A stretch of 64,000 nucleotides of DNA from Macrostomum hystrix (taxonomy: Eukaryota > Animalia > Platyhelminthes), in NCBI GenBank assembly GCA_950097015.1, contig CATNEN010000031.1:434001-498000 (forward strand), in the 5' to 3' direction. The position numbers and the translations under genes were made by a program. Positions 23,701 through 33,734 of this stretch are shown here, piece by piece. The notes beneath the pieces are model-generated. The model was not told the DNA's origin. It saw nothing but the letters and a program-made list of their open reading frames with translations, and ran no database searches. The stretch's first letter is position 1; the number at the start of each line of letters is the position of its first letter.

Positions 23701-26700
23701 TTTCCAGATTTTTTACAATTTTCTCTCTCAGTTTTAGCAAATCGATTCCTCCATAAAGTGTGGAGGGTGCGAAAAGGAGAGAAAACGAGGCAATCTCCAT
23801 TCTAATCCCCTCGGGAGGTCTCGACAGCGTTCGTCCGATTCTCTGGGTCTTTTCGCCTGCACGCATTGAAGTCGAACAGAAAAAAGCTAGGGAAAAATAG
23901 GACCAACCGGGATTAAAACATGACTACGTGCGACCTCAGGGCCGTGGGCTGCTAGAGACCGAGGAGGATCTATGAATGTCTGAGGCTGTTTCTCCTTACC
24001 AGGTAATGGCTCAGTGCGGCTGCCCGCATGCTGGGAAATAATTCCTATTAGCATTTTTAGAGCCCAGCTTTTGTCACTTGCCTTCTGCGCTAATCCTGAA
24101 TTCCCCTACAGATCATGGTGCGTGAATTGAACCCGGCTTAGCACCTACCAAGAGTCTTTGTCCTATAGAGGAGTTGTCCATGAGATACTAAATAGCTTTT
24201 AATGATTAGAAAATTGCTCTACAACGTTTGTCTTGTCTGTTCTGTCAGACTATTCTCGGTCCAATCAATCGCTTATTGGGGTACTTTGAATCCAGTCAGG
24301 GTGTTAAGCTGATTATCTGATTAGCCATGCAGACTTCTTCGTGCTTTCGCTTGGATAGCTCACTGAAAACTCATTAACCCAACTTTCGATCTCAGCCTGT
24401 AGACGTCATGCTCAAACGTCCTACAGACTATGGCCTTAGCTTTACTATAACGATGCCAATCAACCTTTATGAAAATTAATATTTCAAGCAATTGGTTAAT
24501 GTCTAGCTGAATACTGAATTCGGAGACGAGACATCCTTCGCTTAAATGCGTACAGAGAGCTACAGTATGTGAATACTGCTGACCTGAGTCGCTGCAATTT
24601 CATATTGAATGCCTCCCGCCATCTGCAAAGCTTCTTACCGTGGACTCTGAAGTGCTGCCTGAACCATACGTACTGGTGGACGGCAGCAACAAGAACGGCA
24701 ATTCCTGCCGATCCTCGCCCGGTGGCACCCCTAAGTTGCCGGCTGAACTCAGCGAACGGTCGCCACCAAAGGTGACGCACTGGACATCGTCGCCAGTGTC
24801 CGGATCGCGCACAATCACCTCTGCGATCTTGCTTCGCAGGGCCATATTCTCAGGTATGCGAGGCTGCGGTGGGCTAGCAGTGCAACCGGATGGCAGGAAG
24901 CAGGTCTCGATCACTGGTGGCTCATCGATTTTGTCCAGCACCACTATGCTGACGGTGGCGGTTGCAGTCTTTCGATACTCTTTGTCGTGAGCATTGTCTC
25001 TCGCAATCACCTGATTTTTTCAGGAAAATTCGGCTTTGTTCTTGGCAAAACCAGCGTTTGAATTATGGCTAACCCAGAGTTTGAATCATGGCTAACCCAG
25101 AGTTTGAATGATGGCTAAACCAGAGCTTGAATCATGGCTAAACCAGAGTTTGAATCATGGCTAAACCAGAGTTTGAATCATGGCTAAACCAGAGTTTGAA
25201 TCATTGCTACACCAGAGTTTGAATCATGGCTAAACCAGAGTTTGAATCATGGCTAAACCAGAGTTTGAATCATGGCTAAACCAGAGTTTGAATCATGGCT
25301 ACACCAGAGTTTGAATCATGGCTACACCAGAGTTTGAATCATGGCTAAACCAGAGTTTGAATCATGGCTAAACCAGAGTTTGAATCATGGCTACACCAGA
25401 GTTTGAATCATGGCTACACCAGAGTTTGAATCATGGCTAAACCAGAGTTTGAATCATGGCTAAACCAGGGTGTGAATCATGGCAAAATTTTTCTTTTGTC
25501 ATTAAATCGAATTCTCTACATTTAAATTTTGTTATCTTATAACGTCATAATGATATATATTTGTATGATAATAATTGTGTCTATTATTCATTTAATGTTG
25601 TTCTCAATTTTCTACAAAAGCGGCTAATATAAAAATTCAACTGCGGAACATTGTCAACTGGGGATCATCATCAATGGGGACTCATCATCAAATGGGGGAT
25701 CATGGTCAACTGGGGGAACATTGTCAACTGGGGATCATCATCAATGGGGAGTCATCATCAAATGGGGGATCATTGTCAACTGGGTGATCATCATCAACTG
25801 GAGGACCATTTCAACTGGGGGATCATTGTCAACTGGAGGATCATGGTCAACTGGGGGATCATTGTCAACTGGGGGGATCATCATCAATGGGGACTCATCA
25901 TCAAATGGGGGATCATGATCAACTGGGGGATCATTGTCAACTGGGGGAACATTGTCAACTGGGGATCATCATCAATGGGGAGTCATCATCAAATGGGGGA
26001 TCATTGTCAACTGGGGGATCATTGTCAACTGGGGGATCATTTTCAACTGGGGGATCATTGTCAACTGGGGGATCATTGTCAACTGGGGGATCATTGTCAA
26101 CTGGGGGATCATTGTCAACTGGGGGATCATTTTCAACTGGGGGATCATTTTCAACTGGGGGATCATTGTCAACTGGGGGATCATTGTCAACTGGGGGATC
26201 ATTGTCAACTGGGGGATCATTTTCAACTGGGGGATCATTTTCAACTGGGGGATCATTGTCAACTGGGGGATCATTGTCAACTGGGGGAAAATTGTCAACT
26301 GGGGGATCATTGTGAACTGGGGGATCATTGTCAACTGGGGGATCATAATAGCTTTAAAAAAGCTGAAAATACAGCTGCTAAAAAGTATATACTAGACGAA
26401 TTAAAAATATTTCTGCTCCCCGAAGGGGGGCAAAAGTTGCTAGTTCGCTTCTAAAAATATGCGACCAACCAACTCACCTCAAAGTGGAAGTTCTTCTTCG
26501 GCATTCGATCGTAGTCCAGACGCTTTCGAATCAGAATCCGACCGTCAGGCAGCACTGAGAAGAACTGCCTGGCCAGCTGCTGGTCGTCGCCGGCTGTGGC
26601 AGCGAAGTCGTACACAACGGTGCCGTAGGCGCCGGAGTCTTTGTCTGTGGCATGCAGCTGCAGAATCGCGCTGTTAACTGGCTCACTCTCGTAGATTGGC

Positions 26701-29700: not shown

Positions 29701-30132
29701 CAGAACAGAACAGAACAGAACAGAGCAGAACAGAACAGAACAGAACAGAACAGAACTGAAGAAAATATCTTACCTGCACTGCGTTGGATTAGAGGGACAC
29801 AATGCCTCCCGATCGACACGTCCCTTGACTCGGATGTCGCCAGTGTCAGGATCTACCTCGAACAGGTCCCTGGGATTGGATTTCTGAAACAGGTGAAACT
29901 TCTTGCCAGCGGTTGGGATCTTGTGCACATCATAGTGATGTGCCTTCACATTGCCGATGATTGTGCCGTTTGGCAGCTCTTCGTCCATGCTGAATTCCAG
30001 TGCGCCGGCCGGTACCACACAGTGCCAGCAGCAGATGAGGCAGGCGACAATCAGGACTGTCCGAGTTGCTGGGCCACTGTCAGAACGTCTGGCCATAGCG
30101 GGCCAAAGCTGAAAAAGCATCGGTAGCTGCAT
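17752..30132 (-). CDS. Protocadherin with 7 cadherin repeats (delta1-like), single TM segment, about 1099 aa
   Basis: Exons 29774-30132, 26478-27144, 24639-25010, 22559-22735, 21284-21961, 20653-21181, 19147-19226, 18277-18364 and 17752-18101 total 3300 nt in frame. Features: signal peptide; EC1 EELPNGTIIG..DREALCP..C; repeated DRE and DxNDN motifs; TM IVVVCLSVMFLVLGIATVTVVCLIV followed by RKR. The three small tail exons are less certain. Confidence 0.9.
25043..25487. repeat. Tandem repeat, 23-bp unit (CCAGAGTTTGAATCATGGCTAAA); protocadherin intron 2
   Basis: About 19 units read directly. Confidence 0.95.
25636..26346. repeat. Tandem repeat, 18-bp unit (GGGGGATCATTGTCAACT) with a degenerate, block-duplicated left part; protocadherin intron 2
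   Basis: Units read directly; explains five overlapping ORFs between 25651 and 26454. Confidence 0.95.
28613..28889. repeat. Tandem repeat, 60-bp unit, about 4.6 copies; protocadherin intron 1
   Basis: Sequence lines 28621, 28681, 28741 and 28801 are identical; explains ORF 28611..29129. Confidence 0.97.
29468..29757. repeat. (ACAGA)n pentanucleotide microsatellite immediately next to the protocadherin exon 1 donor
   Basis: About 58 units read directly; explains ORFs 29433..29819, 29450..29779, 29452..30126 and 29465..29680. Confidence 0.98.
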
Positions 30133-30921
30133 TAACGGAAGACATTCAAGTTGAATCTTAAAATTATCTGGTTAAAAGCAACAACAACTTACAACTATAT
30201 CGAGCACGAAGACAAGAATTGTAGGAATATTCTTATTCTTTCAATAATTTGAGTTGTGCTCTGAAAACTAAAATGCTATATGCACAGTATAAGGCAGCGT
30301 TTTGTTTTGTAGCAAACGCTTTGACTACAGCCCCCCTTATTGCAGTTCAACTCTGCCATATTTCATCCGAATCCACCCCCCCGGAGTGCGAGCGAGCCCA
30401 TTGGCCAGGGCCCGCGGTATTCTGCCTGCATGCATTGGTCCCTGTAGGGCAGTAAATTGTGCGGACTCTGCAGAAACTGAGGCTCTGGGGGCGCCAATCC
30501 CTTGGCCTAACCCTAACTGAAAGTATCCCGTTGGGGACTCGGAGAGGTTGCTGACAGTGAGTAGTCAGTTTCAATCTTCTGGTCAAAGCACTGTCTTTTT
30601 CTGTGACCACTTTATTGTACCTTGGGGCGATACAAGCAGAAATATAGGAGTACAGAGATTTCTCCTGAATTTCTCCTGGCTTTTTGAACTGTCCCACTCG
30701 CGTAAGATCAGGGTTCAGCTTATTGCTTCAGGTCTAGTTTTTGCATCTGCTCTGCGCTTCCAAATGATTACTCATGGTCTCTCTCATATCACTTCTGTGT
30801 GAATGCGGAAGGCTGAAGAGCTGTTCGAACTATTCTTCTGCTGCACAAATGCACAAATGCCACATAGTTGGCTCTTTACATATTGTGCTTTCTGTCCACT
30901 CTAATAGCCAACTCTACGTCA

Positions 30922-31839
30922 CATTCCCTCATTCCCTCATTCCTCATTCTCGCATTCCCCCATTCCCCCATTCCCTCATTCCCTCATTCCCTCATTCTCG
31001 CATTCCCCCATTCCCTCATTCCCTCATTCCTCATTCTCGCATTCCCCCATTCCCCCATTCCCTCATTCCCTCATTCCCTCATTCTCGCATTCCCCCATTC
31101 CCTCATTCCCTCATTCCTCATTCTCGCATTCCCCCATTCCCCCATTCCCTCATTCCCTCATTCCCTCATTCTCGCATTCCCCCATTCCCCCATTCCCTCA
31201 TTCCCCCATTCCCTCATTCCCTCATTCCCTCATTCTCGCATTCCTCCAATACCACCTTCCCGAATTCTCGCATTCTCTCATTACCACCTTCCCAAATTCT
31301 CGCATTCCCACATTCTCGCATTCCCACATTCTCGCATTCCCTCATTCCCCCATTCCCTCATTCTTGCATTGCCCCATTCCCTCATTCCCTCATTCCCTCA
31401 TTCTCGCATTCCCCCATTCCCCCATTCCCTCATTCCCTCATTCCCTCATTCTCGCATTCCCCCATTCCCTCATTCCCTCATTCCTCATTCTCGCATTCCC
31501 CCATTCCCCCATTCCCTCATTCCCTCATTCCCTCATTCTCGCATTCCCCCATTCCCCCATTCCCTCATTCCCCCATTCCCTCATTCCCTCATTCCCTCAT
31601 TCTCGCATTCCTCCAATACCACCTTCCCGAATTCTCGCATTCTCTCATTACCACCTTCCCAAATTCTCGCATTCCCACATTCTCGCATTCCCACATTCTC
31701 GCATTCCCTCATTCCCCCATTCCCTCATTCTTGCATTGCCCCATTCCCTCATTCCCTCATTCCCTCATTCTCGCATTCCCCCATTCCCCCATTCCCTCAT
31801 TCCCTCATTCCCTCATTCCCTCATTCTCTCATTCCCATA
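30922..31839. repeat. Low-complexity (CATTCCCT/CATTCCCC/CATTCTCG)n array with an internal duplication of about 367 bp
   Basis: The marker CTCCAATACCACCTTCCCG occurs at 31244 and 31611; explains ORFs 30774..31969. Confidence 0.95.
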
Positions 31840-32548
31840 TTCTTCAGTCTATTCTGATATAGTTTTTTTCATTTTATCTGTCAATCTCGGTGTCAGTCTG
31901 AGTGCTAATTGCGACCTGCTTTGCGGACCCATAGGCGGACCTGCTTTGCGGACCCATGGGCGGACGTGAATTAAAGCGGCATGGAACCGAGTTATTGATT
32001 TATTGATCTGCCATAAAAAGCCACAAAGCCATGAAGAGGCGGCACAGGAAATTAACTGTCGAATGGCTTCGTATCCGCCAGGCGATAACCCAAAGCACCG
32101 CTTTTCCGAGATCAAGTGAAAATGATTAACTAAACGCTTTCATAAAGAATATCACCTGTCCAGTGGCATGAACGAATTGGAGCTGAGAAAGAAGGTCACA
32201 TGCATGGGAGCAGGCTCCTGGGAGCACCCACCCCCACCTAGAGGACACCCATGCGGACTGACAGCTGTTTGTAGAAATCGAACAACGAAACCAGACAAGC
32301 GGCACGCGGACTGGCCTGTGTGACATTTCGAGCCGGTGAGTTTCTGTTGAACTAGCAAATATTGAAGAGATGAAGTCACGCTTGCACTTCGAGTCCTAGT
32401 TATGTAGCTCGAAGTTTCACTATTTCACTGCAGAATCTTTCAGTGAAAACTACCTGCTGAGCAACAATCTATAAGGGGATCGGCAACAAACTCCTACAAG
32501 TTTAAATAGAGAAAACTCAGAATCAACATATAAATTTTCTTAGAATTT

Positions 32549-32588
32549 TGCCAATGCATTTCGACCACAATCGGTCATCTTCAGGGCA
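32549..32588 (-). ncRNA. Minimal type I hammerhead ribozyme motif (inverted copy)
   Basis: Exact reverse complement of the motif at 33102-33141. Confidence 0.75.
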
Positions 32589-33101
32589 GACACATCAATT
32601 AAACACACAGAACCAAGTTATATATATTTTAAGAAATGAAAACTGTACATTGCAAAGTGCGAATCAATTTCGGTGCAGTCCGGTTGACAAGAGAAAAAAA
32701 ACAACAACCAAATAAAGTTCAACGACGCTTCCAGGGTTAAGGAGCATTGGATTAGAAATTCTGCCATCAATGAGCATCTTCTCTCGTGTAACTCCTGTTG
32801 CAATAAGAACTGTTGTGATATGTTTAAAGTAATCCTGTAGCCAAGAGAAAAATTGAATATTCTCGAGGCTATGTACATTAAGGCTCAGAAACCATATTTG
32901 AACAGTCAGTTAGCCATGGGGGGTGCAAGCCGCCAACTCAATGTGTTTTAGCTATGGTAGAAGCGTCGTTGAACTTTATTTGGTTGTTGTTTTTTTCTCT
33001 TGTTAACCGGACTGCACCGAAATTGATTCGCACTTTGCAATGTACAGTTTTCATTTCTTAAAATATATATAACTTGGTTCTGTGTGTTTAATTGATGTGT
33101 C

Positions 33102-33141
33102 TGCCCTGAAGATGACCGATTGTGGTCGAAATGCATTGGCA
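33102..33141 (+). ncRNA. Minimal type I hammerhead ribozyme motif of a Penelope-like element
   Basis: TGCC (stem I), CTGAAGA (core), T, GACC-GATTGT-GGTC (stem II), GAAA (core), TGCA (palindromic stem III), TT (UH site), GGCA (stem I'). Confidence 0.75.
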
Positions 33142-33734
33142 AAATTCTAAGAAAATTTAAATGTTGATTCTGAGTTTTCTCTATTTAATTGTTGTCAAGC
33201 GAGCTACTCTACCTGAATCCTACAAGTTTCTGCTCAGCTTCTGGATGCTTATGATGGGCCAAGGCCTGACTCATTGAGGGAATGCCAGGTTGCTGCAGCG
33301 AAATAGTGAAACTTCGGGGGAAAGCTGAGGAATGCAGGCCACGTGCTGCAGACTCTTCAGTCAGTATCTGAGACAGCTCAGGCTTCATGCCTTGCTTTCT
33401 TGTCTGATTGAAGCAGCAGTCGCGAAGGGCTTACGACTTCCGCGCAGTCAAATACAGGCATAGCCCCGCTTTGTGTTTTTACTTTTTCCTAGACATTGTC
33501 TGCTCGAAACCGGACGTGCAGTTGTGGGGTCCCCGTCTCCACCCGGAGGAACAGCTCCGAGAATGCTGTATGACAGCTGCACAAGTCAGAATCATTCATG
33601 TGATTTTAATCTTTTTTGTCTTGTCTGAGCTGGAAAGTAACAAGCTTAAAATAAACTGAATAGCAAGTGAAGTCTCTAAGATTATATTGATCAACATCGT
33701 GACCCAAGGACGATCTACAAAGCAGTTAGACACT

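Follow-up and report, generated by a model that had tools for sequence, protein, structure and literature searches.

In a 64,000-nucleotide stretch of the genome of the flatworm Macrostomum hystrix (GenBank assembly GCA_950097015.1, contig CATNEN010000031.1, positions 434,001 to 498,000 of the forward strand; hereafter the window, in whose own coordinates positions are given), a 714-bp insertion lies at 32504-33217, bounded by perfect 12-bp target-site duplications (TSDs) and placed between flanks that are both single copy in the genome. We consider it very probable that these 714 bp are one dead insertion of a canonical Penelope-like element (PLE), i.e., one with a C-terminal GIY-YIG endonuclease, which shows the standard anatomy of such insertions, carries the minimal hammerhead motif of its family once per arm, and sits at the locus as a passenger. 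A preliminary description of the stretch had reported a Penelope-like insertion made up of an inverted 3' segment, a GIY-YIG tail, a 3' untranslated region (UTR) and a 29-nt extension between TSDs, and each of these parts was recovered where it had been placed (Table 1).

The insertion consists of two arms in opposite orientation around a unique center: the sense copy is 5'-truncated, and the inverted copy, which meets it head-to-head, is truncated further. The arms (32502-32731 versus 32960-33188) are 99-100% complementary, with two substitutions and one indel as the only differences. Read in the frame of 32733, the center translates as RVKEHWIRNSAINEHLLSCNSCC...EAMYIKAQKPYLNSQ...NVF*, and the frame 32733-32951 corresponds to the last 73 codons of the GIY-YIG endonuclease of the family, with 88% amino acid identity to residues 79-155 of the endonuclease encoded by a long family copy (L031). 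This remnant is broken: compared with the sister copies L002, L003, and L004, a 5-nt deletion is followed by an in-frame TAG at 32838-32840, and there is a 1-nt deletion besides. The length of the tail, which is present at one end only, can be read as 29-31 nt, given a 2-nt microhomology with the TSD. In the family alignment, other copies that lack a tail have their 3' ends at the equivalent of 33177-33193. As a side observation, the 3' tail of this family resembles that of a family with 66% identity to it (L034).

A search of the 220-Mb genome with the sense part of the element (32732-33217) gave at least 53 matches. Identity is 84-97% for most of them and 79-97% overall, apart from one more distant family at 71%, and these matches begin at many different 5' ends, i.e., 5' truncation is variable. 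The family of the insertion comprises at least 50 copies in the M. hystrix genome. A genome search for a parent element with a linked reverse transcriptase (RT) had been proposed in the preliminary description, and copies of the same family combining RT and GIY-YIG do exist: L002, a 97% identical copy, has a single 442-aa open reading frame (ORF) in which RVT_1 is followed by GIY-YIG, and L031, 2.5 kb long, has a 379-aa RT ORF and a 155-aa endonuclease ORF. In the sister family L074 (66-68% amino acid identity), a 713-aa RT-endonuclease (RT-EN) ORF with both domains is intact, the hammerhead motif is found 217 nt past its stop, and the PLE-specific DKG motif, seen in this sister family only, reads GYDKGYG in the translation, N-terminal to the RT core. 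At G000:C8:2492436-2497180, part of which is covered by L074, the sister family is present as a head-to-head pair of nearly complete copies whose open frames span 666 and 750 aa, which repeats the inverted architecture of the window at a scale of 4.7 kb. A wastewater metatranscriptome (run X2) compared with window positions 32534-33235 yielded contigs 90-99% like the element, without flanks, and the family or close relatives are therefore present in that sample.

Each arm holds a minimal type I hammerhead motif with a palindromic helix III, as the preliminary description had proposed. On the sense arm it reads TGCC-CTGAAGA-T-GACCG-ATTG-TGGTC-GAAA-TGCA-TT-GGCA at 33102-33141 (+), with its mirror within 32547-32590 (-). 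Helix I of the + motif is formed by 33102-05 and 33138-41, followed by the core CUGAAGA (33106-12) and an extra U (33113); helix II is formed by 33114-18 and 33123-27, after which come GAAA (33128-31), the palindrome UGCA (33132-35), U16.1 (33136), and U17 (33137). The catalytic boxes C3-U4-G5-A6-N7-G8-A9, G12-A13-A14, and A15.1-U16.1 are all present, together with a residue other than G at H17. The core pattern CTGANGA-N(8-24)-GAAATGCAT has two matches in the window, one per arm and on opposite strands, against 0.00 expected from 100 shuffles. A stem-aware descriptor and a covariance model find just the two arm sites in the 64 kb on both strands, the arm sites scoring 56.1 bits in the model and the next best match in the window 10.7 bits. 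A motif arisen by chance is ruled out by the shuffle expectation, the descriptor, and the model scores. Both motifs have the modal sequence of the family, with no core mutations.

For a comparison beyond the family, 3' flanks were taken from 40 divergent GIY-YIG matches in two batches. In 16 of the 20 PLE flanks of the first batch, the motif lies on the sense strand, some 150-250 nt past the stop, and none of the same build was seen on the antisense strands; the second batch yielded further cases. The common build is CUGANGA, a U, a helix II closed by G10.1-C11.1, GAAA, a 4-nt palindrome, U, H, and a short helix I. Thirteen distinct sequences, drawn from eight PLE family representatives and grouped in about five sequence classes, could be aligned unambiguously. 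In all 13, no variation was seen in the catalytic boxes, in the U that follows A9, in G10.1-C11.1, or in A15.1-U16.1. The stems, on the other hand, covary: helix II occurs as GACCG/UGGUC, GUCCG/UGGAC, GGCUAG/UUAGCC, and GCACG/CGUGC, helix I as UGCC/GGCA, UGC/GCA, and AAC/GUU, and the palindrome as UGCA, CGCG, or AGCU. Changes on both sides were recorded for eight of 13 pairs (four of five in helix II, three of five in helix I), and 88.8% of the cells were paired (95% in helix II) versus 25-36% when the partners were slid; none of 500 shuffles reached the covariation score. Among the eight family representatives, the motif forms an island of 64% pairwise identity within UTRs that are otherwise 29-32% alike. 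The 3' UTRs of the PLE families cannot be aligned elsewhere except at one more conserved stretch, AATGTTG, about 20 nt downstream of the hammerhead, with equivalents in L034, L039, L042, L045, and L056; this box, or the 3' tail that resembles that of L034, could be a recognition site for the RT or the endonuclease.

Judged from this covariation, the motif is a conserved RNA structure of hammerhead form, common to the PLE families of this genome. Within the family, 1.7% of sites diverge in the motif, while the share reaches 4.9% in the sequence upstream of it and 2.9% in that downstream (Fisher p 1.5e-6), which we read as constraint in the replicating lineages and not at inserted copies. In active elements, the motif would be kept by selection on the retrotransposon RNA, where it would self-cleave as a dimer via the palindromic helix III, and/or serve recognition by the RT.

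The closest published counterparts are the minimal hammerhead ribozymes of PLEs in Schistosoma mansoni (Cercyon family; Cervera and de la Peña 2014, PMC4209133), which have a nucleotide between A9 and G10.1, a helix I of 4 bp, a conserved G10.1-C11.1 pair, and palindromic 15.2-16.2 positions, and which occur as dual motifs about 100-700 bp apart on opposite strands. The motifs of the window resemble them in belonging to a flatworm PLE and lying in a repeat 3' of the ORF, in the CUGANGA and GAAA boxes, the unpaired nucleotide between A9 and G10.1 and the G10.1-C11.1 pair, in a helix I of 4-5 bp without a defined loop 1, in a palindromic, presumably dimer-dependent helix III, and in the opposite-strand pairing, here at 553 bp. 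They differ in that helix II has 5 bp (four Watson-Crick pairs and a G·U) instead of the 7-8 bp of the main Schistosoma families, and in having the 4-nt palindrome UGCA, as in Drosophila, rotifer, and shrimp variants, where Schistosoma has a bare 2 nt. The preliminary description had called the extra U after A9 and the 4-bp stem I unusual, but both are published traits of the flatworm PLE class (PMC4209133), and the extra U is shared by all 13 aligned sequences. As far as it is relayed in PMC4209133, the work of De la Peña and Flores (2001) gives a further parallel, namely an extra residue at the same position that is tolerated by an active natural hammerhead, although that hammerhead comes from another source and is not retroelement-borne. 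Likewise, the AUU cleavage triplet, also flagged as unusual, is allowed by the NUH rule, with middling efficiency (PMC8879150). AUU is specific to the family of the window, while the sister families have GUC or UUC.

The arrangement of the two arms recurs across the family. Exactly one arm was tailed in all 10 head-to-head family copies examined; the ends with a tail fell at query positions 483-486, those without one at 446-466. Since eight of these 10 composites have their own TSD, of 9-14 bp, around the whole, each composite would derive from a single integration event. Moreover, among the 150 best genome matches of the hammerhead model, all 26 motif pairs within 5 kb, that of the window included, are oriented (-,+) and none (+,-), and no direct tandem pseudo-LTR (long terminal repeat) was seen in the examined copies of the family. 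In LINE-1 twin priming, too, one integration gives rise to two head-to-head cDNA segments inside a single TSD; LINE-1 uses a different endonuclease and RT, and its inversions have neither the tail signature nor a ribozyme. PLE insertions have been described as heavily truncated at the 5' end, where a second, inverted and also 5'-truncated copy adjoins (Craig et al. 2021, PMC8557442), and as having an optional tail of 30-40 bp, often at one end only (PMC8557442, PMC11167929). Both the inverted arm and the presence of the tail on one side thus belong to the standard PLE architecture.

An origin for this architecture is suggested by the Anolis PLE protein, which in vitro cuts both DNA strands, extends them, and initiates reverse transcription at two neighboring internal positions, one on either side of the tail (Frangieh et al. 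2024, PMC11167929). In the window's family, a staggered endonuclease break would allow both DNA ends to prime reverse transcription, so that one arm would be copied from the tail-including start site and the other from the tail-less one, the two being joined head-to-head. The both-strand cleavage and extension and the tail-bracketing start sites of PAc (Poseidon of Anolis carolinensis, PMC11167929) fit the anatomy observed here; PAc, however, belongs to another PLE clade and host, and its hammerhead overlaps the ORF start. Compared with canonical endonuclease-bearing (EN+) PLEs (Arkhipova 2006; Craig et al. 2021, PMC8557442), the family has in common the 5' truncation, the abutting inverted copy, the one-end tail, and a TSD of variable length, as well as the order of RT and C-terminal GIY-YIG and the DKG motif (here in the sister family); it departs from them in the missing direct pseudo-LTR of the examined copies and, judged by eye, in the number of cysteines between GIY and YIG of the endonuclease (PMC8557442), to which we return below.

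Table 1. Features of the PLE insertion and its borders (window coordinates).
Feature	Position	Strand	Basis and remarks
Left TSD, TCCTACAAGTTT	32492-32503	none	12-mer 100% identical to the right TSD
Inverted 5'-truncated arm, 228 nt, copy of the family 3' UTR without tail	32504-32731	-	Minus-strand match to the family, sense-unit positions 229-457
Minimal type I hammerhead motif, inverted arm	32547-32590	-	Predicted cleavage between 32553 and 32552; model R1 56.1 bits, E 1e-15; descriptor match
Remnant of the GIY-YIG endonuclease C-terminus, stop codon 32949-32951	32732-32951	+	Translation and alignment with sister copies
Sense 3' UTR	32952-33188	+	Family alignment
Minimal type I hammerhead motif, sense arm	33100-33143	+	Predicted cleavage after 33137; core-box pattern, descriptor, model, covariation across families
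AATGTTG box	33160-33166	+	Alignment of eight PLE family representatives; putative role
29-nt PLE tail, one end only	33189-33217	+	No counterpart on the inverted arm
Right TSD, TCCTACAAGTTT	33218-33229	none	12-mer 100% identical to the left TSD

Several observations weigh against the reading of the insertion as a canonical PLE with a hammerhead ribozyme in each arm. Canonical EN+ PLEs have a CCHH motif whose two cysteines lie between GIY and YIG (PMC8557442), while by eye only one is found there in L002 (VVYKFHCSVDQNISYIG) and L074 (VVYQFNCSVDQSTTYVG), with two histidines downstream. Among the scored matches, which set a lower bound, no uninterrupted full-length ORF of the window's own family was present; in its best copy, the RT frame stays open for 390 aa and is then broken. 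The twin-priming origin draws on the anatomy and on one in vitro study of a lizard PLE, and we infer it as such. In a covariance-model search for hammerheads, a check named in the preliminary description, the Rfam models (Hammerhead_1, _3, _II, HH9, HH10) had no match at E<=10 in either a 6-kb or a 121-nt slice. This outcome is to be expected, since minimal hammerheads lack the real helix III and loops that the curated models require, and such ribozymes were originally found with descriptors; it counts neither against the motif nor in its favor. In addition, the sequences for the covariation analysis were chosen by their core boxes, which biases the conservation of the core, making it partly circular, but not that of the stems. 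In the predicted dimer (cofold), AUGCAU/AAUGCAUU forms an intermolecular helix, in which U17 extends the palindrome to 8 nt (AAUGCAUU) and A14 pairs with U17, and this longer palindrome could compete with the active core. Finally, no same-orientation partner motif was found in the 64-kb window or beside the examined copies of the window's family. Elsewhere in the genome, the 150 best model matches include just two same-orientation pairs no more than 6 kb apart, at G000:C31:624063-626626 and G000:C8:2497138-2503027; they are candidate tandem (pseudo-LTR) arrangements and could form cis dimers.

It is possible, though we think it unlikely, that the motif is not mainly self-cleaving but a structured element for recognition or dimerization, bound by the RT-EN protein or pairing templates, which is hammerhead-shaped by descent and for which cleavage is dispensable. 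PLE minimal hammerheads show no activity as monomers and cleave only at low levels as dimers in vitro (PMC4209133), which speaks for such a role, as do the Anolis results, where the hammerhead did not cleave without protein, its cleavage was not needed for in vitro insertion, and no RNA-seq ends mapped to its site (PMC11167929). The U17-extended palindrome and its A14-U17 pair point the same way, and two arms from two start sites per head-to-head insertion would fit paired templates. However, in at least five sequence classes the nucleotides required for catalysis never vary, in contrast to the covarying stems, which is hard to fit with protein binding alone, and the PLE hammerheads of plants, fungi, and protists are fully active (PMC4209133). 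A narrower proposal, to which we give little credence, is that the motif mainly pairs two PLE template RNAs, so that either end of a break copies an RNA of its own, one starting at the tail site and the other at the tail-less site, and that the hairpin arising as a by-product could feed small-RNA silencing of the family. If true, it would explain why each head-to-head insertion has one tailed arm and why the motif is retained despite feeble cleavage.

Two further explanations concern the locus itself. The preliminary description had placed the motifs 2.4 kb upstream of a protocadherin ATG, and the measured distance agrees with it: the insertion lies 2.36 kb upstream of the ATG at 30132 of a cadherin-repeat gene on the - strand, whose first coding ORF, 29770-30132(-), has Cadherin and Cadherin_2 domains. 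It had also suggested that transcripts crossing in either direction could be cut. For such cutting, with an effect on the cadherin gene, the geometry relative to the ATG is right and both motifs are of modal family sequence without core mutations. Nevertheless, the suggestion was not supported. With one motif per strand, a transcript of either direction carries a single ribozyme strand, accompanied by the complement of the second, therefore no cis dimer is possible in a class that depends on dimers, and the complement on the same transcript is predicted to sequester the motif: the predicted fold of the whole-element RNA is a hairpin of about 230 bp (-448 kcal/mol) with 237 pairs between the arms, and each of the 44 motif nucleotides has its partner in the opposite arm. 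The window's pair is also one of at least 26 such genomic pairs, which marks it as a by-product of integration. Assembled contigs (Logan) from four of 13 public runs, aligned to the window, held pieces 90-99% like the element, with no flank sequence and no informative joints; contigs cannot show RNA ends and are a weak test, but they give no support for transcription of the flanks. Cutting of host transcripts at the locus appears unlikely, and we hold an effect on the cadherin gene by this route to be highly improbable. Because of the single ribozyme strand per transcript, the low, dimer-only activity of the class, the predicted masking hairpin, and the dispensability of cleavage in vitro for the Anolis PLE, which showed no RNA-seq ends at the hammerhead site (PMC11167929), we infer that the motifs at this locus are probably passengers of a dead insertion, without host function. 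Least credible of all is that the palindromic structure is an assembly artifact, or a foldback or DNA transposon with terminal inverted repeats. PLE inverted structures do trouble assemblies (PMC8557442), and the arms, together with the TSD, do look like long terminal inverted repeats. Against this, the 12-bp TSD is perfect and lies in single-copy flanks, the same architecture with its own TSD occurs at eight other loci, the inner part is formed by the 3' end of an RT-EN gene, the two ends are not alike, the tail being on one side, and the arms differ by two substitutions and an indel, unlike a collapse artifact. Both an artifact and a DNA transposon were rejected on the TSD-flanked composites elsewhere and the RT-EN interior.

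The surroundings of the insertion contain further repeats. Between the cadherin ATG and the insertion, a (CATTCCCT)n array of 915 bp, with about 115 units, occupies 30922-31836. A 362-aa ORF at 30774-31862(+) was rejected as a gene, being a product of this array with no Pfam match. A 24-nt inverted repeat, 96% complementary, lies in the single-copy flanks around the insertion (32410-32433 and 33293-33316); the spacing of its two arms was about 133 nt until the PLE inserted there. In addition, at 25651-26454 (+), among the cadherin exons of the - strand, there is a 267-aa ORF with matches to hexapeptide-repeat and eIF2B-epsilon LbH models.

The element type, the geometry of its insertion, and the minimal hammerhead, including the traits that had been flagged as unusual, are already published for PLEs of flatworms or other animals, and the insertion is a textbook example of a known PLE class rather than an oddity. 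For annotation, 32504-33217 is to be treated as repeat DNA upstream of the cadherin gene. The curated Rfam models again miss the class of minimal hammerheads. What the genome of M. hystrix offers is a comparative set, with at least five hammerhead sequence classes whose stems covary and 10 of 10 head-to-head copies with a single tailed arm, and this set agrees with the model of two start sites and both-strand priming that came from the lizard PLE in vitro.

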